A DNA stretch of 64,000 nucleotides from Blastocladiella emersonii ATCC 22665 (Eukaryota; Fungi; Blastocladiomycota): NCBI GenBank assembly GCA_025594325.1, contig JANHCV010000004.1:2449225-2513224 (forward strand), given 5' to 3'. Position 1 is the stretch's first letter. Every line of letters starts with the position of its first letter. Below, one piece after another: positions 2,771 to 45,705 of the stretch. Position numbers and translations under genes: made by a program. The notes beneath the pieces were generated by a model that was given only the letters and a program-made list of their open reading frames with translations, was not told where the DNA came from and did no database searches.

Positions 2771-5299
2771 GGTGAAGACGTTGCGCGGTTGGTCGAACGA
2801 CGACTACACAAGGAGGCCGAGAGATGGACATCATGAGTGGTTGCCGCTCGACTAATCAAGCACAAAACGCGTAGCGTAACCGTGGGGGAAGACGCGCGGT
2901 TAGTCGAAACGACGACTACACGGGGAGGTCGAGGGTCAGTCGCTGTGAGTCGGCGCCGCTCTTCGACTCGAGCGCGCAGCGCGTACCGTAACCGTGCGGG
3001 AGGGAGGCAGGAGCGAAGACGACGGACTGGCCTGGGGCGAGGCTGGTCGGTCGGGGGTGCTTGCAGGAAGCGCAGAAGTGGCGGTGCCGAGGGTGCTGGG
3101 CCGTAGAAGTCGAGCCGTGGACGAGCGTCAAGACGATGACGACGAGGTGGTTCGTCGGCGGCGAAGGCGAGCTTGAACGGGAGCAGGTGGGCAGAGCCGG
3201 GTGCGCTGGATGCAGGCAAGTTGGGGTGTAACAACACTTGAAGCGTTGCGCCTGGAAATCCGTCGAGTCGATGCGGGTCGTGTTAACGAGGGTGCAAATG
3301 GCTGGCGGATGAGGAACATGGGAGAGCGGGGTTGGCGGGGTTGCGGGCAGTCATTTTGTACTGCGGGCAGTGTGTAGGGCTAGTGAGCGAGGTGAAGTCG
3401 AGGATTCGCGGTCGGTCACGACGACTGACTGACCGGCGAACGAGCGCGATGGTCAGCCGAGCGCCGCGCACCTGACCTGGAATGACCCTCGCTTTCACGG
3501 CTCGGCCGAAGCGAAAGCGGGTGATGCAGGAGGCTGAGCCGAAAGCGTGATGTCTCGCACCTCGGCACCGCCACGCGACGCGTAGCTGTTGCAGCAGAGC
3601 GCGGTGATCGGCCACGCCGCGGGATCAGCGAGCCGAGATCGCTGGTGCCCGCGCACCGTCACGATAGAGCTTCCTCCAGCGGGTTAATCTTCATCTCAGC
3701 GGTGCTTCATGCCCGCATCTCTGACGAAGTCGGCGAGAGAGCAAAAGACCCGATGCGCGGGCCCGCGCACGCCGTCGATCGTGCGGCCACTGGTCGAGCT
3801 GAGCGCGGAAGCATGGTCACCGATGGATAAGCTGCTCTCTCGCGCTCTCTCGCGCTCTCTCGCAACAGATACGGTCATAGGTCACCTGCAAGGCTTCCCC
3901 GTCGAGCGGCAGCTTGGCGGCGGGGAAGCGTGCACGAGCGCGAGTGTATGAGCGAGGGAGCGAGCGGGGGAGGGTCCAAGACCCATCGTGGGGCAATCGT
4001 GAGGATAGTCTCGGCAAGGGAAGGAGCAGGCGCGGCCGTGTGTAGCAGGAGAGGCAATGCGGTACCATAAGGTACGAGAGAGGAGGGGTGACCCGGCGCG
4101 GGGTACGAGTGAGGCGGTGGAGGGAGGGAAGCGCGCGACGAGGGCCTCGAGAACACCGATCCGTCATAGTTTCAGCAAGTGTTGACGAGGAAGATACATG
4201 GGAGCGCGCGGATCGGGTCAGTGCGTGTGTCGAGGGAAGCGGGAAGAGCGCGTCGGTCATACCGCGTGATGTGGCGCCGCCGCCGACCCCACGCTGCCCG
4301 GGCAACGCGTGCGTGCGCCGACGCGTGGGAGCCCACGTCAGGGGAACCGACCGCCCCCGTGGCGCAGCCGCCCTTGACCGCCGTCCCCACCACCAGCAAC
4401 GACTCACGGTACACAGAGCGCGAGCGGTAAGCGCGGTGTCCCGCGGGAGAAGACCGATCGCGCGACGCACCCCGTCCAGCCTTAAGCGCAAGACGACGCG
4501 CTGTCCGACTTATCGCATCCAGTACTAATTTCGGTAGAGACGGGTTTCGAGAGCTCAGGTCAGTCGAGGCGGGCGACGCGGCGAGCGGTAGTAGCCGTGA
4601 GGGTAGTGACGCGCGGGCCGCGCGGCCGGGGCGCAAGGTGACCGACCTCGCTGCACAGACCGCCCTTCATCGTCTCACTGCACATCGGACTCTCTCGCGT
4701 GTCAATCGAGGCTGCCGAGGCGGCCGAAACGGCGAGCGCCGGTAGCAGTGAGGGCGGGGACGCGCGCGGCCAGCATGGTCGCCTCACGCCCATCACCGAC
4801 CTCGAGCCCGCCCTCCTGCGCCTTCTTACACATCGAGATCGCATGCGCATGACGTTGCCGCACCTCGCCCATGCCGCGCGCGAGTGTCGCGACCGTTACG
4901 AGCGATCCAGCTGGCGTGGGAAGAGCTGTGATCGCGAAACTGATCATGTCGGGCTGCACGACGTTGCGGCGGTGCCCCGGGCGTCAGGGCCTCGGCGGGG
5001 TCGCGGGCAGTTGATTGCATGAAGCTACGAGTACGATTCATTTGAGTGGTGGAGTTGCGTTGGTGTAGGTGGAGAGCGGGGATGGGTTCCGTGCCACCTC
5101 GCCGACTTAGCCAACGCGTCGCGGTGGCCGCTCGCCAATCTTGCAGGCCTCCCCCTTCGACGCCGCGACCAAGGGACCTGCAGAAAATTTCTCTTAAGAT
5201 GCTTACATTGCTACGAAGCCCAAAAACCGGACCCTAGCCTCCGATCTCACACCCATCTCGCTCAGCTCCACATCGCCTCGCGCATGCGCGACCTTCGCT

Positions 5300-10313: not shown

Positions 10314-10715
10314 GGGTGGTGTGTGATGTCTGCTGGCAGTAAGGCCCAGCGCGGTACCCGATGCGCAGAGATGCCAGGGACGGGCGAGGAGGGCCGCGGG
10401 CCGCCCGATGCCAATGAGCGAGCGGAAATCCTCGCGCGATACATGGGGCCGCGCGGGAGGCAGATAAAGCGGGCACGTTCGTGAGGTGGGAGAGGTTCTG
10501 CGTTTTGCGGGCGCTCGCCGACCGACGCGAGGGCGCGGGACGCGTCGCGAAAGCACGTGGGAAGCAGCTGACGGCCGGTCGCGCTCTTCGTTCCTCGCGC
10601 CGCTGTGTCGCCGTCGCCGGCGACCCTTCGCATGCTTGGCTTCCCGCGCGGCAGTGCCCCTCAACCAATGCGAAGCCCGCACTTGATGCATCTCTGAACG
10701 AACGGACGCAGCACC

Positions 10716-39526: not shown

Positions 39527-39799
39527 GTAGTGCAGTTTCGAGGGCTAAAGCCCTCTATTTTGCCTAGCCGACGCGCGCCCTTGGGATCTGACGTGTCTCC
39601 CTGGCCCACGTGCGTCACGCACGTGTTTCACGCGTTTCACGGGATATAACCAACGCGTACGAGTCTCTCACCACCAAGCTCTCTCGCCTGCAGTCAATCG
39701 TGATAGTAACAAAAAAAAATCAAATATTGTGAATGAGAGGACAGCAACAACAAAAGAGGGAAACGGAGGAAGTGGAGAGAGGAACACGACGTCGTTCAG

Positions 39800-41060
39800 T
39801 TAACTGCGGCCGGCGCGGCGGCGGCGGCGCTTGGGGACCGCCTCAAACTCGTCCTCGTCGTCGTCACCGCCCTCCTCGGTGGCCATGGCGGCCGTGCGCT
39901 TGGGCGCGTCAGCGGGAACGGCCGTGGCCGACGCGACCTCGCGATCCGTCGTGCCTGCCTCCTTGATGATGGGCGCCGCGAGCGTGACTGTCGCACTTGA
40001 AGTCGACGACGACGACGACGCGGCCGACGAGCCGACCGGCGGCCCGGCGGGCTGTACGGCGGTCAAGAGCGTCGAGGTCGACGACGACGAGGCGACGGTC
40101 GCGTCGACCCGCGAAACGGCGGGCTGCACGGCGGTCGAGGATGACGACGACGCGTTGGTCATCTGCGGTGCGGCGGTCTGCACGGCCGTCGTTGAGGAGG
40201 ACGACGAGGCGACGCCGTCGTTGAGCTCGCGCAGGATCCCCGCCATGCGCGTCGTGAACTCGGGGTCCGAGTCGCCCTCCTCGTCGGACACATCAAACAC
40301 GAGCCGCGGCTGGCGCACGGGCGAGGACAACGTCAGCCCCGACAGCTGCGTGGCCGGGGTCGGCGGGATGCACTCCTGCGGGCGGGCGCCGTACGGATTG
40401 CTGCGGCCCGTGGGACCGCCGTGATAGTGCGCCGGCGGCGGCAGAGCGGGCGCCGACGAAGAGCCCGCGGGACCACCGTGATGGTGATGGTGGGCGAGGC
40501 CGTCGACGGCTGCTGCGGCGGGACGGCGGGCGTCGACGACGAGGCGGGCGCCGACGACGAGGAAGAGGGGGTGGAGGGCGGGTTGAAGTACGAGGCCGGC
40601 GGGGGCATGGCGGGCGCCGTGGGCGCCGAAGGCGGCGGCGCCGGCGTGGTGATCTTCTGCTGCAGCTGCTGCTGCACCTGCGCAATGAAGTCGAACGGGA
40701 TGCCGAGCGCCGCCATGTCCACGGTGACAACGAGGTGGTAGGGCAAGGGCATGGTGACGAGCACGTTGTTGTTGTATACCTCGGAAATGAGCTCGATGGT
40801 CATCGCGTCCATCTCGTACACGTGCACCTGCACACCCTGCATGCAGACGAACACGGGGCGCAGGTAGAGGTTGCCGGTCACGCTGAGAGTGAAGCCCTTG
40901 GCAGCATTCCGGCGCCGCGTGAGGCGGTCGAACAGATGCCACCCGGGCGTGCCGACCGCGGGCGACTTGACGAGCATCATCGAGGTGCGCGCGAGGATCG
41001 GGTCGGGGACAGGGGGGCCCGGCGCGGCGCGCGGCGGCTCGACGTACTGGATCGCGGCGC
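39800..41060 (-). pseudogene. 5'-truncated, frameshifted cargo ORF inside the Helitron-like element
   Basis: Host-like codon bias from ~41060 (IQYVEPPRAAPG...MLVKSPAVGTPGWHLFDRL...) to ~40490, continuing in another frame (HHHHGGPAG...KRRRRRAGRS*, ends 39800). Globular N-part, low-complexity C-part. Confidence 0.6.
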
Positions 41061-41065
41061 ACACC

Positions 41066-42583
41066 ATGTCGCCGTATGGCGGCTGCACCGTCATGCTCGC
41101 CGGCGACCATTTGCAGCTTCCACCAGTGAACGGCACGGCGCTGTTCCAGCTACCCGAGGTGCTCGACGATGCGCCAGACTCGTTCTTTGAGCGGCTGCTC
41201 GCGTACGACACCACGGGCTCGAAAAAAAAGCACTCAGGACAGCTCGCGTACTGGCGCGCGCGACGTGTCGTTCGACTCGTGCCCAGCAACCGGTTCGTCA
41301 ACGGCCCATCATGGGGCAGGTGTCTCGACGCGTTCCGGCTCGACAAGGCCCCTGACGAGCTGCGCCGCCTGCCCGACTCGCGCACGACCGCTCGCCTGCG
41401 CCAGCTGAGCGACGACCAGGGCAACTACGCGCTCAAGAAGATCCTCCAGACGCGCGGGCTCACGGTCATTGCGCCCAACAACTACACGCGTCACACCTTC
41501 AACCTGCTGTACACGCGGCTCGCCGCTGCGGACCCAGAACGCGTCGTGTTTCAGATCAAGGCCAGCATCACGCGCAAGAAGGAGCGAAACGGCGCAACCG
41601 TCCGCCTCCCGATTGGCGAAAGGGACCTGTTCCGTCTCGCCGAGGAGCCCGACTCGATCACTCGTTTGCCAACCATCCTCGAGGTCTTTGTCGGCATGGA
41701 AGTGCGCGTCAAGGTCAACCAGTGCGTCGAGAAGGGGTGCGCGAATGGCGCTATTGGCATCGTGCACCACATTGACTGGTTTCCGGGCACGACGTTTACC
41801 GAGACCGGCTCGCGCATGTACCGCCCATCGCGGGAGCCACATACTGTGTGGATCTACCTGCCCGACGCGCCGCCTGGCCCTCGGTTTCCTGGCATGCCGG
41901 CCGATTGGCCAGACACGGTCATCCCGCTCGCCATGCACTCGGACGACCTTCTCTACAAGGAGGGCGGTATGACGTCGCGCGAGCGAACCGAACCCAAGAA
42001 ACCCGAGTCCAGCGCACTGTGTGCCAAGATGGTCAATAAGTTTAAGACTCACGAGCAGTACAAGGATCACGAAAAGATCAAGATCAAGCAGTTCTCAATC
42101 GTGCCCGCCTTTGCGATGACGGTGCACGGGGTCCAAGGCGTGACCAAGAACGCCATCATCTTGACGGATCCGTGCCCAGCCGGCTCGTCTGGATCGATCA
42201 ACGGGTCGTCGCTGTACGTTGCGCTCTCGCGGCTCCGCGAGAGCGCGTGTCTGTGGGTTCTCCATCCGATCCCGGACAGCGTGTACGACGCCATGGTCCC
42301 TGATCCGCGGGCCGTGGCCGAAGACTTGCGGCTCCAGGCGCTAGACGTGTTGACTGAGGGCGCGTTCGCTCACGGACAAACCGTTTCGCACAACCACCCC
42401 CGAGTCGCGGAGCTCTTTTGCCACGCGATGCAAGAGCACCGCCAGATCAAGAGCGACAAGGAGGCGAAGCAGAAGGCGCGCGACCAAGAGTACTCAAGGC
42501 GGTATCGCGAGAGTAAGCGCGAGCAGAAGCGCGCTCCAGAATTGCATGAGCAGCGGCGGAGCAAGAGGCTTCGCGAGCTTTAG
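41066..42583 (+). pseudogene. PIF1-family (SF1B) helicase, C-terminal two-thirds; lacks Walker A/B
   Basis: PYGGCTVMLAGDHLQLPPV (motif III), LEVFVGMEVRVKVN...GCANGAIGIV, FAMTVHGVQGVT (motif V), LYVALSRLR (motif VI). No GxxGxGK(S/T) or DE motif upstream. Confidence 0.85.
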
Positions 42584-42918
42584 TGTGTTAAAAAGTATAC
42601 TTAGCTGCTCTTAATTATTTTGGTGTGTGATGGGAACAAAGATGCGACCCCATAATGACGCGCGACTGTCAGCGGTACAAAACCTCCCGCGTGTGCCGTG
42701 CTCCAACGTGGCGGAGGGCTTTAGCCCTCGATTGAAGACCAGACGCGAAGCGTCTAGGTGGTTCAAGTAAAATTGGATTGTGGAAAGTGGAGAGAGAGGA
42801 GAGCGGAGAGCACTCGAACGGCAACCGACGCGTAGAACGTGTGAAAAGGACATCACGTTGCCGAGCGCGAAACGCACACGGCTCCCCCCGTCCCCCACGC
42901 ACTCGCTCACCCACTGCA

Positions 42919-45306
42919 ATGACATACTACGACGACGATCGAGACGTGCGAGAAGTCATAGAGGAGGTTCTTCGCACCCACAAGTTCCCAGACTGCCACT
43001 GCGATCCCGGCGGCGAGGGCTGCGAGCGGTGCTGGTCGATCCGCCAGGAGTACATCAAGTTGCAGCAGCAGCAGCAGACGCTACCACCTCGTCGCGCTCC
43101 CGTGCTCATGCCCGCCGACCAGGCCCCCAAGCTCGGGACCTTCTAACAGCCGCTGTACTCGTGGGCCAACCCGTCAGCCAAGGCGCTCGCCCGAGCGTCC
43201 GAGCCCGACCCCGGCCTTGCACCGCTGATCAGGGGCGGCGACCAGTGCACCCTCTTCGCGATGCGGGTGGCCGGGTGGATCTGCGGCAACTGCCCGGCCG
43301 CCCGAGCCGAGTTCGACAGCGCCGCGGGGTGCCCGCGCGTGTGGGTGTGCGACGAGTTTGCCGTGTACATTGTCCCCTCAAACGCGTTCCAATCGCCGCT
43401 CCCGCTCGACTCGGTCCGTGTGACCACCACGCAGCGGTACGAGCAGCCCGCCAATTCGACGGCGTCGCTGCCGTCCGAGACCGCGTCGGAGGCTGCCCCG
43501 CCGCGCATCGACTCCATTGACCTCATGGCCGACGGCCTCGTCTCTTGTGACCCCAAGCTCGACGCGGTCGTCACGCAGCCGTCGGCGGGCGACGTCGAGC
43601 CCATGCAGTGCGACACGGGCGACCCCGCTCGCCAGCGCAAACGGCCTCGGAGTCGCAGTCTCTCGCCCGCCGCCGTTGCCGCGGGCCCGCCGCTCGTCGC
43701 GAAGCGGTCCCGCACCGACCTCCCGCTCGCCGCCAACTCGCTCCTCAGCCCGCGCGCCGCCCTCGCCCTCACCGGCGCCAACTCGCTGCCCACGCCGCCA
43801 TCGGGGCCCGGGCTTACCGCACCCGCGCCGCTGCCGCCCGTCGCACCCGCACCGCTGCCGATGCAACCACCTGCCGCGCCCATCTTCAACCCGCCGTCGA
43901 GGCCGCCAAGGCCGAGGCCCAGGCCGCCCTGCCTGACGCCCGCGCGGCGCTCGCCGAGGGGGCCAAGGCGGCTGCTGACGCCAAGGCCAAGCGCATCAAG
44001 GCGCGGGCGACGCTCATGGTCGACAAGCGCCGGTGGGACCGGTACCTGTGGTTCTCGTACCAGGTCTTCCAGCCCAAGTACGTGTACGGCGTGTCGGCCG
44101 ACGGTAAGCTGTTCAACTCGTTCTCGGGCACCGTGGAGACCAACGGCTACGAGATCCGCATGATCGACTACAAGGGCGGCATGCGGCTCGAGGGCCTCAA
44201 GCTCGCGCTCGGTCTTCCGCAAGGTGGTCAGCGCGTGTCGACGGCCGGCGTCGCGCACGACCCGCTCGACGAGGTCATGTCCGGGACCGAGCGGATTGAG
44301 CCCTCGCCCAGCGCGCGCGCGCCCATGGCCATCCACCGCGGCCTCATTGCGCTTCGGCCAGGTCAAGCGCTCGTCGGCATGGACCCCGGTGTCCAGCGGC
44401 AGTACGTGGCCGTGCACTTCACCACGTTCGACATCGTGCTCATCAAGCAGCTCAAGGAGTCGCTCGCGTCGGCCACGACGCCCGCCGAGCGCGAGGCCAT
44501 CGCCGCCGAGCTGCACGAGGTCGTCTTCAAGCTCGTGCGCGACCGCGACCGGTACCAGGCGTGCTCGCGCAAGCACTACAACCACGAGGTCGGCAACAAC
44601 CTGCGCGTGCATCTCGTGCGCCTGTGGCGCAAGAAGTACGGCCTGCCCGAGATCGACCTCAAGCTCTCGCGCCTCGCCGGCTCGCTGTTCCAGTACACGC
44701 TCGCCGCCACGCAGGCGCTGCCAAAGTACCTCGCCTACGCCTTTGACCGCCGACTCGCCCGCCTCAAGTTCTTCCTCGACGGCAAGGAGCGTCAGTGGTG
44801 GACCGACATGGGCAACGGCCTCAAGTCGTGCGACGCGGGCGGCGCTGCAGCTGGGGCCGTGCTGCTCATCGGCCGCAACTTTGGGAACTTTAGCATGATC
44901 TCGTCTCCGTCGCGCGCGCCCGTCGTCAGGGGGGCTAAGCCCCCCTGCCGTCGTCAAGATGGCGCGGAAGATGCGCGGCCAGCACGTGGACACGCACCTG
45001 GTGAACGAGAACTTCTCGTCGCAGCGCTGCGCTCCGTGCACCGCCGCCTTCCCCGAGCTCGCCAAGGACAAGTCGCGCAACATGGCCAAGCCCAAGGACG
45101 GCCGGCACGCGACGCTGCGCTGCCCGCAGTGCCGCGACCAGCGCAACCGCGACGTCAACGCGGCGCTCAACATTGTGCTGTTCAACATTGACATTGACAA
45201 GATTGTGTTCGTCGACGGCAACCCGCTCGACGACCAGGTCTTCGCCCCCCTCGTGCTCGCCGAGCGCGCGCGTCACCGCGCGACCCCCGCGACCACCACC
45301 GCCTAG
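42919..45306 (+). pseudogene. Fanzor1 (TnpB-derived RuvC RNA-guided endonuclease), disrupted by a stop (43144-43146), a 1-nt frameshift (~43892) and a 28-bp insertion (44920-44956)
   Basis: FSGTVETNGYEIRM (F..xI.TDG-like), RuvC-I LVGMDPG (D at 44382), IGRNFGNF...SRAPVV, RuvC-II LVNENFSSQRCAPC (E at 45007), CPQC, RuvC-III NRDVNAALNI (D at 45151). Removing the three lesions gives one ~786-aa frame. Confidence 0.88.
44920..44956. repeat. 19-bp palindromic insert flanked by 9-bp direct repeats
   Basis: CCGTCGTCA-GGGGGGCTAAGCCCCCCTG-CCGTCGTCA; perfect stem CAGGGGGGC/GCCCCCCTG with a TAA loop. Confidence 0.9.
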
Positions 45307-45520
45307 GTCCGCTCCCTGTCGCGCGTCATCGGCTTCGGGGGTTTCCTCGACCCGCCGTTTGGGCGCGCGCTCGTTCGGCCGTGTGCATCATCATCCTCGC
45401 CGCTCCCATCAGTCCCGCCCTGCGCGCGACCGGGTGTCTGGCGTCTCACGTCCATGGGTTTGGGCGGGCCAAGTAAAGCTCTTGAGCCCGTGGTGGTTTT
45501 TGTGTATCGTTGTCAAAATA
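45307..45520 (+). ncRNA. Candidate Fanzor omegaRNA / element right end
   Basis: Non-coding interval directly 3' of the Fanzor stop. Contains stem-loops (GGC..GGGT-TTCCTCG-ACCC-GCC near 45331-45356; CGGGC-CAAG-TAAAGCT-CTTG-A-GCCCG at 45465-45490) followed by GGTGG-TTTTT. The call is positional inference only. Confidence 0.45.
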
Positions 45521-45705
45521 CGAGGATCAGCCTGCCCAACGCGAGCCGAAAGACGCGTCGCCGATCGCCACGTGGGCAAACGAACGCCGGCTGCCCCGCC
45601 TCCGCCCGCCTGAAGAGACGCGGCTCTCATCTTCTCCACACTGCATGCAATGGAATAACGAACGACTTCTTACTTCTTGCTTTCTGCTCTGCGACCGTCC
45701 GCACC

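Follow-up and report, generated by a model that had tools for sequence, protein, structure and literature searches.

The closest described relatives of the gene considered here are Fanzor1 nucleases; Fanzors are eukaryotic, TnpB-like and RNA-guided. Bao and Jurka gave the motif of the TnpB/Fanzor superfamily as D-X(125,275)-[TS][TS]-X-X-[C4 zinc finger]-X(5,50)-RD (PMC3627910), and a rearranged nuclease site has been described for Fanzors, with Gly or Pro in place of the canonical RuvC-II Glu and a conserved alternative Glu tens of residues downstream (PMC10530073). Fanzor1-carrying Helitron2 elements with target-site duplications (TSDs) of 7–19 bp are known (PMC3627910, PMC10530073), and Fanzor1 has been reported from Allomyces macrogynus (PMC3627910), a relative of the water mould Blastocladiella emersonii. 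We analysed a stretch of 64,000 nucleotides (nt) from B. emersonii ATCC 22665 (contig JANHCV010000004.1, positions 2,449,225 to 2,513,224), hereafter the window, in whose coordinates all positions without a locus label are given. At 42919–45306 it carries a Fanzor-like gene whose long frame-0 open reading frame (ORF) matches the GenBank protein H9P43_004653 (KAI9183735) at 100%. The locus is very probably a non-functional, single-copy, mosaic remnant of a gene for a Fanzor1-like RNA-guided RuvC endonuclease.

A Fanzor1-like RuvC nuclease core

Three-frame translation of the plus strand of the window recovered every motif that an earlier note on this DNA, made from the sequence alone, had named, and found them spread over two reading frames (Table 1). 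The two pieces of the nuclease core are open for 341 and 115 codons and retain every family-invariant residue. The Bao–Jurka motif is present only across the frameshift: the Asp lies at 44382, SS-QR-C starts at 45016 and RD occupies 45148–45153, with 199 residues from D44382 to SS-QR-C in the annotated reading and 201 when the 28-bp insertion described below is removed, and the zinc finger has the form CxxC...27...CxxC, followed by five residues and then RD. The rearranged RuvC-II site is found as Gly in LLIGRNF and a Glu after strand beta5 (VNE) about 36 residues on; among 13 aligned paralogues, the alternative Glu is present in all 13 and the Gly in 12.

Profile searches revealed matches over the C-terminal part of the core, with RuvC-II, the zinc ribbon and RuvC-III. 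Pfam PF07282 (Cas12f1-like_TNB) matched window positions 44959–45303 with an E-value of 7.4e-11 and a bit score of 42.5, above the gathering score (26.3), and also matched nine of the ten paralogues scanned. NCBIfam guided_TnpB (E = 6.5e-6) and the Cas12f2 and IS200/IS607 TnpB models matched the same C-terminal stretch, PHROG transposase families matched the C-terminal part as well, and the paralogue profile, run against PDB sequences, matched ISDra2 TnpB, LaTranC, Cas12f, ApmFz2 and SpuFz1. The N-terminal half of the core and the N-terminal module ahead of it gave no match in Pfam, NCBIfam, PHROGs or PDB sequences. Because sequence profiles were blank on the N-terminal half of the core, RuvC-I was tested through structure.

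The annotated core was modelled with AlphaFold2, with 12 paralogues as the alignment. The model had predicted local distance difference test (pLDDT) values of 80–95 over residues 131–430 (residue numbers follow the model) and the strand and helix order of an RNase-H fold, with D161 after the first strand, LLIGR as the fourth strand, E358 after the fifth and D406 opening the last helix. In a Foldseek search against the PDB, the top seven matches were Fanzor structures (five of SpuFz1 or GtFz1 and two of PpFz; SpuFz1 E = 6.8e-6), TnpB and Cas12 ranked after them, and 50 of the 50 listed matches were Fanzor, TnpB or Cas12. Alignment to SpuFz1 with VIA-align gave a Z score of 13.7 and a root-mean-square deviation of 3.2 Å over 222 residues (model 141–425, chain 362–623); the other Fanzors followed with Z scores of 11.3 (PpFz), 10.1 (the Fanzor2 protein ApmFz2) and 9.6 (GtFz1), ISDra2 TnpB scored 9.7 (model 152–425, chain 182–378) and Cas12f about 9. 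Fanzor1 structures aligned over 222 residues, compared with 175–177 for ApmFz2 and TnpB, and structural neighbours in the AlphaFold database were 'Cas12f1-like TNB domain' proteins. The aligned ranges place D161 at D383 of SpuFz1 and D191 of ISDra2 TnpB, and D406 within two residues of D606 and D361, respectively; D191 and D361 are catalytic residues of ISDra2 TnpB. In SpuFz1 the catalytic residues are D383, E541 and D606 (PMC10432273).

The locus thus belongs to the TnpB/Fanzor superfamily and is a RuvC nuclease gene with the D/E/D residues and the C4 zinc finger preserved. The earlier note had read it in this way, and PF07282, the TnpB profiles and the structural matches to SpuFz1 and ISDra2 TnpB bear it out; the comparison that it had proposed, of D44382, E45007 and D45151 with the RuvC active site, came out positive at the level of aligned ranges.

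Lesions in the reading frame

Three lesions interrupt the gene, namely a premature TAA, a frame break at which one base is short, and a frameshifting insertion of 28 bp (Table 1). The 28 bp consist of a 19-bp insert and a second copy of the 9-mer CCGTCGTCA, which occupies 44920–44928 and is repeated at 44948–44956. The insert holds a perfect 17-nt palindrome, GGGGGGCT-A-AGCCCCCC, at 44929–44945, which turned up nowhere else in the window or in the fetched paralogue loci. Judged by this anatomy, the 28 bp are an insertion with a target-site-like duplication. They lie between strand beta4 and the helix leading toward the alternative Glu, and the resulting frameshift loses the Glu, the zinc ribbon and RuvC-III.

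The locus was present in three DNA runs, of the sample used for the assembly, and in no RNA run. Evidence from reads was taken from Logan contigs of these three runs, aligned to 42700–45600 at a likeness of at least 85%. Contigs of 1649 and 1749 nt span 43861–45509 and 43761–45509, respectively, with no differences, and the TAA at 43144 is spanned by other short-read contigs, again with no differences. Because contigs of the same strain reproduce all three sites exactly, the lesions, for which the earlier note had sought confirmation in reads, are not assembly errors. Contig depth is flat over 43961–44830, and the sole contig there at the threshold of at least 85% is that of the locus itself; the core is therefore single-copy at that level. 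Over the N-terminal module a second contig variant occurs at about one to two times single-copy depth, which fits the copies of this module at two paralogue loci, L003 and L008.

All three DNA runs also contain one contig that joins 44901 to 45449, skipping 547 nt across the 4-nt microhomology CGTC, with at least 61 nt on either side and a depth close to single copy. Candidate sources are a deletion allele of the locus, a second small locus, or a separate element of about 130 nt.

Mosaic structure of the gene

In a tblastn search, residues 1–373 of paralogue P0005 (H9P43_003300, at L003) aligned with 80% identity to 42919–43998, in a single frame that passes through the TAA. Protein identity of the N-terminal module is about 88% to P0005 residues 1–335 and 86–88% across P0005 and P0017 (H9P43_000697, at L008), and its DNA is 89.8% identical to L003:7990–9005 and 91% identical to L008. 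The DNA homology to L003 is confined to 42908 to about 43894–43896 and includes only in-frame indels (3 and 24 nt). For the module compared with P0005, the ratio of nonsynonymous to synonymous substitutions (dN/dS) is 0.42 and dS is 0.14. At L003 the module joins a complete Fanzor core in frame, through a linker rich in Pro, Arg and Ser, within one ORF of 1103 codons, so that the N-terminal extension from 42919, already proposed in the earlier note, is genuine Fanzor coding sequence. As the module is about 90% identical in DNA to the P0005 lineage but the cores of P0005 and the window gene share only about 25% identity, the window gene is a mosaic. A language-model search with the module returned weak leads only (scores of at most 0.84), to the N-terminal domains of Fanzor-like or TnpB proteins.

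The core frame starts by 43896–43902, and its GC content at third codon positions is 0.96 from 43896. The frame thus breaks at the very edge of the homology. The break at 43894–43902 is therefore probably a junction left by recombination or deletion, which accounts for it better than a coincidental loss of 1 bp. Of the three lesions listed in the earlier note, the TAA, the frame break and the 28 bp are all real as sites, but its interpretation of the break, placed at about 43892, as one lost base gives way to the homology boundary found there.

A further defect lies upstream of the core. Eight aligned paralogues carry a segment of about 30 residues, xPxLxVRxRF...L, located 40–70 residues ahead of the W-D motif. 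A motif profile built from these eight recovered the segment in a ninth paralogue, P0017, as a positive control and had no match in any forward frame of 42501–44100. The N-terminal 224 residues of the paralogue with the nearest core, P0002 (H9P43_004874), have no counterpart in the window. AlphaFold2 models of the N-terminal region are low in confidence, and that of P0002, with pLDDT 35–60 at its N terminus, is too uncertain to say whether the missing segment is the first WED strand.

Paralogues in B. emersonii

An exhaustive single-sequence HMMER search of 1.84 billion representatives yielded only 16 proteins at E ≤ 1e-3, all from B. emersonii, and no Fanzor outside this species at E < 1e-3; the 17th paralogue, P0017, was found through the N-terminal module. 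The nearest core is that of P0002 (44% identity, E = 1.3e-83), and the other paralogues are 27–37% identical. Intact ORFs with complete catalytic motifs are present in at least two paralogues, P0002 (639 codons) and P0005. P0015 (H9P43_000783, 926 amino acids (aa)) has N-terminal introns at L006:4340–4422 (83 nt, GTACGT...CATAG) and L006:4516–4621 (106 nt, GTGCGT...TTCAG); its core lies in one exon and is probably intact. As the introns of P0015 have good signals, some Fanzor paralogues may carry genuine introns. The broken copies are the window locus, P0003, P0009 and P0017, which has an in-frame TAG and a frameshift, and P0014 lacks the RuvC-I Asp. As far as these searches reach, the family is species-restricted and deeply diverged, and its paralogues, of which there are at least 17, have decayed to different degrees. 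The name 'Blastocladiella' was not found in the part of the supplements of the Saito paper (PMC10432273) that was available.

Two of the paralogue loci share a longer repeat. L003:7919–11423 and L008:7919–11353 are copies of a 3.5-kb unit, 96% identical, with sharp ends and differing flanks. The unit starts with TTAGTCTACTCTCG, 82 bp ahead of the ATG, and ends with ...CCAAATGATACA, 111 nt past the stop; its sole ORF is the fusion of N-terminal module and Fanzor core, it holds no transposase, and no terminal inverted repeat or TSD is visible. Its appearance is that of a Fanzor element that was mobile recently and lacks a transposase. To the left of the unit at L003, an 84-bp stretch (L003:7840–7922) recurs with 95% identity at L008:5395–5478, 2.4 kb upstream of the L008 unit and in or beside a Na/H-exchanger gene model.

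Transposon context

Upstream of the gene ends a Helitron2-like repeat. At 42700–42774 its contig depth reaches about 140 times that of single-copy sequence, and past 42773/42774 many contigs diverge. Its paired palindromes at 39538–39555 and 42714–42731 are 100% complementary (none expected by chance), an ORF at 40871–42583 inside the repeat (39536–42774) is PIF1-helicase-like and looks 5′-truncated, and the unit matches the Bao–Jurka description of Helitron2 (PMC3627910). The Fanzor gene starts 145 bp past the repeat end, outside the palindrome-bounded unit. In the 3′ flank, where the right end and omegaRNA of a Fanzor element would be expected, CAAGTAAA and a hairpin followed by GGTGGTT resemble a Helitron2-like terminus, contig depth rises 2–4 fold over 45416–45512 and contigs break at 45486–45509, so that a second such terminus near 45470–45500 is possible. 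The predicted RNA fold of the flank is no better than that of shuffled sequence (z = −0.68), Rfam gave no match to it, and it shows no similarity to the flanks of eight paralogue loci; neither an omegaRNA nor inverted repeats were identified at the window locus.

These features allow a reading in which a composite Helitron2-like transposon, bounded by the 5′ hairpin at 39538 and a second terminus near 45477–45500, carries the Fanzor gene as cargo, with the 28-bp insertion as a by-product of Helitron2 activity. The paired palindromes, 3′ hairpin and high-copy terminus directly upstream of the gene, the recurrence of the terminal motifs at 45470–45498 with raised depth, the known Fanzor1-carrying Helitron2 elements and the resemblance of the inserted palindrome to the GAGGGCT-(AA or TT)-AGCCCTC hairpins of the neighbouring repeat all agree with it. 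We nevertheless regard it as unlikely: the gene lies outside the repeat-bounded element, other copies of the high-copy repeat end at 42773/42774 and continue into unrelated flanks, the motifs downstream of the gene are short, the composite was seen in no second copy, and Helitron-like hairpins or termini occur at none of eight paralogue loci within 4–8 kb on either side. Because those eight loci are free of such hairpins and termini, chance adjacency to a very abundant repeat is the simpler reading, and Helitron carriage, which the earlier note mentioned for Fanzors in general, reduces here to adjacency.

A proposed in-frame gene of about 786 aa

The earlier note had reconstructed an in-frame gene of about 786 aa over 42919–45306, recently hit by a nonsense mutation, a 1-bp deletion and the 28-bp insertion, with probable intact siblings in the same genome. 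We consider this version, in which the siblings would be near-identical, quite improbable, even though its three lesion sites are real, its core pieces are open with the invariant residues kept, and an in-frame fusion of module and core exists at L003. The frame break falls exactly at the edge of the 90% DNA homology, and the segment that lies between module and core in L003, and ahead of the core in P0002, is absent in all forward frames; because this conserved segment is absent, the 786-aa repair would be an untested chimera. Near-identical siblings are not borne out either, as no other contig is at least 85% similar to 43961–44830 and the closest protein among the 1.84 billion searched is 44% identical. 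Nor do the mosaic structure, an N-terminal module already at dS 0.14 from its nearest relatives and the lack of a close sibling fit a lightly damaged, recently inactivated copy of a young family.

The annotated introns

The GenBank protein H9P43_004653 is 649 aa long, bears PF07282 and is modelled to start at ATG 43261. In its model, two of the lesions fall in 'introns', one of 62 nt and one of 34 nt, and the third, the TAA, is avoided by a start downstream of it. The genome was annotated with funannotate, with AUGUSTUS, SNAP, GlimmerHMM and GeneMark-ES as ab initio predictors, and the text of the genome paper names neither RNA-seq nor a transcriptome (PMC9730499).

For comparison, 140 introns of B. 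emersonii verified by expressed sequence tags (ESTs) are 55–333 nt long, mostly 60–79; they are bounded by GT and AG and have a branch site that resembles CTAAC (PMC2773782). Five single introns solved in housekeeping genes of the fetched loci are 54–87 nt long, start with GTAYGY or GTCCGT, and thus with G at +5, carry CTAAC, CTGAC or CTCAC close to their 3′ ends and terminate in YAG. We therefore took as intron criteria a length of about 54–333 nt, GT with G at +5, CTNAC 10–40 nt from the 3′ end and a final YAG, and both candidates fall outside them. The 62-nt candidate starts with GTCGCA, lacking G at +5, finishes with GAG and contains no CTNAC; the 34-nt candidate starts with GTCAGG, which has G at +5, and holds CTAAG, which resembles the CTAAC branch site, but it finishes with AAG and is shorter than any verified B. 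emersonii intron. Among alternative GT..AG intervals at both junctions, none restores the frame while keeping the conserved residues.

Comparison with the paralogues points the same way. The 62-nt sequence is translated inside the uninterrupted ORF at L003, and the closest paralogue, P0002, is a single uninterrupted ORF without an intron. At the second junction the paralogues read GPVVEMVKELR; removing the 28 bp gives APVVKMARKM, free of gaps, whereas the annotated splice gives APV--MARKM and costs two conserved residues. A hidden Markov model (HMM) of the ten other paralogues scored 304.4 bits with the 28 bp removed, 291.8 bits with the annotated intron and 188.7 bits unspliced, so that removal of the 28 bp beats the annotated intron by 12.6 bits. 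By these signals, the two breaks are not introns.

The same annotation gives P0003, P0009 and P0017 'introns' of 20, 21, 24, 44 and 50 nt that run across stops and frameshifts (Table 1), and those of 24 and 21 nt each end in an in-frame TAG. This suggests that the funannotate annotation of the B. emersonii genome systematically hides pseudogenes behind micro-introns of 20–50 nt. Since the pseudo-introns of H9P43_004653 bridge two lesions and fail the intron tests, the 649-aa protein is an artefact of gene prediction. The alternative, a correct GenBank model in which the locus encodes an intact, functional 649-aa Fanzor from ATG 43261 with two genuine short spliceosomal introns, accords with the GT and AG ends of both intervals, the restored frame, the catalytic residues all kept and the capacity of eukaryotic Fanzor genes to contain introns (PMC10530073), but is highly implausible in view of the lengths, signals and HMM scores above, the insertion anatomy of the 28 bp (a palindrome flanked by a 9-bp duplication), a start that is internal to a conserved module and corresponds to Val in L003, and an ab initio annotation with similar micro-introns over stops elsewhere.

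Overall reading of the locus

In the intact ancestor, as in other Fanzors, an omegaRNA from the 3′ end of the element would have guided the protein to DNA, which the RuvC site would have cut. That site would have comprised the Asp of VGMDPG, the alternative Glu of VNENFSS and the Asp of NRDVNAALNI, with Gly at the canonical RuvC-II position. The N-terminal module was probably acquired from, or swapped with, the H9P43_003300/H9P43_000697 lineage, joining a core nearest to that of H9P43_004874. The window copy can no longer yield this protein and carries four defects: the TAA, the out-of-frame junction at 43894–43902, the missing upstream segment and the 28-bp insertion.

Several points weigh against reading the locus as a broken Fanzor1-like remnant. 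The reads share the sample of the assembly and come as contigs, which can hide minor variants, and splicing of both short intervals is ruled out by sequence arguments only. The predicted catalytic residues agree with the known metal site at the level of aligned ranges and strand order rather than residue by residue, and placement in the Fanzor1 clade derives from structural neighbours of the model rather than from phylogeny. The diverged paralogues P0011 and P0014 also lack the segment of about 30 residues, and with N-terminal models of low confidence the functional importance that we infer for it is uncertain. Finally, the dN/dS of 0.42 indicates some constraint along the pair, which could include the past of this copy.

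A wider picture can be drawn, although we hold it to be rather doubtful: a private, still partly active Fanzor1-like radiation might be swapping, by recombination, a Cys-rich N-terminal module, bearing a nuclear localization signal (NLS), between cores that are only about 25% identical, with the window locus as a failed, out-of-frame product. The 3.5-kb unit, recently duplicated and home to the intact donor-type gene H9P43_003300, could then be a new self-contained mobile Fanzor element, and the 28-bp palindrome with its 9-bp duplication a minimal insertion or a footprint of the neighbouring Helitron2-like family.

As a non-functional mosaic remnant, the locus is an unexceptional case of decay within a kind already known, and its value is mostly corrective: KAI9183735 (H9P43_004653) is not to be taken for an intact Fanzor. 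Ordinary sequence search fails to link the 17 or more B. emersonii paralogues to other Fanzors. Efforts to find an omegaRNA, and nuclease assays, are sensibly directed at H9P43_004874 and H9P43_003300, not at the window copy. The exchange of modules between lineages provides a small, concrete example of diversification at the Fanzor N terminus.

An antisense ORF of 692 codons on the minus strand (43143–45221) covers the entire Fanzor region, and long ORFs are present in several frames throughout the window. The antisense ORF is a by-product of 66% GC and codon bias and not a gene.

Table 1 Features of the Fanzor-like locus and its surroundings (window coordinates unless a locus label is given)
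Feature	Position	Strand	Details
3′ end of very high-copy Helitron2-like repeat, outside the gene	42700–42774	+	Palindrome GAGGGCTTTAGCCCTC, second hairpin, terminus GGTGGTTCAAGTAAA(A)
N-terminal module	42919–43894	+	Frame of ATG 42919; Cys-rich segments, NLS-like RQRKRPRSRS...AKRSR, Pro-rich tail
Premature stop TAA	43144–43146	+	L003 has AAG (Lys) at the aligned codon; 0 differences in short-read contigs
Frame break, one base short	43894–43902	+	End of homology to the P0005/P0017 lineage; present in short-read contigs
Nuclease core, part 1	43902–44928	+	Helix before W-D motif, WED-like strands, RuvC-I, long helical insertion, beta4
WED-like strands FSGTVETNGY...YKGG	within 43902–44928	+	Translation
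RuvC-I VGMDPG	D at 44382–44384	+	Translation
Strand beta4 LLIGRNFGNF...SRAP	~44865–44921	+	Gly 44871–44873 at canonical RuvC-II position
Frameshifting 28-bp insertion	44929–44956	+	Present in short-read contigs
Nuclease core, part 2	44957–45306	+	Helix, beta5 and alternative Glu, zinc ribbon, RuvC-III, stop 45304–45306
Alternative RuvC-II Glu, VNENFSS, strand beta5	E at 45007–45009	+	Translation
C4 zinc ribbon CxxC...CxxC	Cys at 45028, 45037, 45121, 45130	+	Translation
RuvC-III NRDVNAALNI	D at 45151–45153	+	Translation
3′ flank, expected Fanzor right end/omegaRNA site	45307–45512	+	CAAGTAAA at 45470–45477; short hairpin then GGTGGTT at 45480–45498
H9P43_004653 model, exon 1	43261–43839	+	Protein mapped back onto window
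H9P43_004653 model, 'intron' 1, 62 nt	43840–43901	+	Protein mapped back onto window
H9P43_004653 model, exon 2	43902–44924	+	Protein mapped back onto window
H9P43_004653 model, 'intron' 2, 34 nt	44925–44958	+	Protein mapped back onto window
H9P43_004653 model, exon 3	44959–45306	+	Protein mapped back onto window
Micro-'introns' in other paralogues	L004:4139–4162; L005:4304–4323, 4483–4532; L008:8625–8645, 10656–10699		GenBank models

Comparison with known systems

By the predicted structure, the closest relatives of the window core are the Fanzor1 proteins SpuFz1 of Spizellomyces punctatus (PDB 8GKH/9CEY), GtFz1 and PpFz. Like SpuFz1, it has extended helices inserted in RuvC, a C4 zinc finger and a D...E...D arrangement that uses the alternative RuvC-II Glu (PMC10432273, PMC10530073); each is a eukaryotic protein of a fungus and has an N-terminal extension with an NLS-like stretch, and the structural match spans RuvC and the zinc ribbon (NUC). 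Unlike SpuFz1, to which sequence identity is only about 15%, the window gene has a far shorter region from the first WED strands to RuvC than the REC domain of SpuFz1 and a Cys-rich N-terminal module of no recognised family, and the window copy is broken.

Fanzor1c of Chlamydomonas reinhardtii (CrFNuc; CRe-1/2/3) resides in non-autonomous Helitron2 elements, with the gene inside the ends and short target duplications of variable length (PMC3627910, PMC10530073). The window gene likewise adjoins termini of the Helitron2 type, marked by palindromic asymmetric terminal repeats and by a 3′ hairpin, but it lies outside the repeat unit and is single-copy, in contrast to Fanzor1c with its several conserved copies and EST-supported introns.

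ISDra2 TnpB of the IS200/IS605 family (PDB 8H1J/8EXA) and Cas12f share the RuvC fold and the zinc ribbon with the window core. Compared with ISDra2 TnpB, the window protein is larger and eukaryotic, and it has Gly in place of the canonical RuvC-II Glu, with the alternative Glu about 36 residues downstream; unlike in IS200/IS605 elements, TnpA is absent, and Pfam OrfB_IS605 gave no match to the N-terminal half of the core. The nearest relatives of all are found within B. emersonii itself, where P0002 has the closest core but begins with 224 residues that lack a window counterpart, and where P0005 and P0017 carry the same N-terminal module at about 90% DNA identity, in P0005 attached to a core that is about 25% identical.

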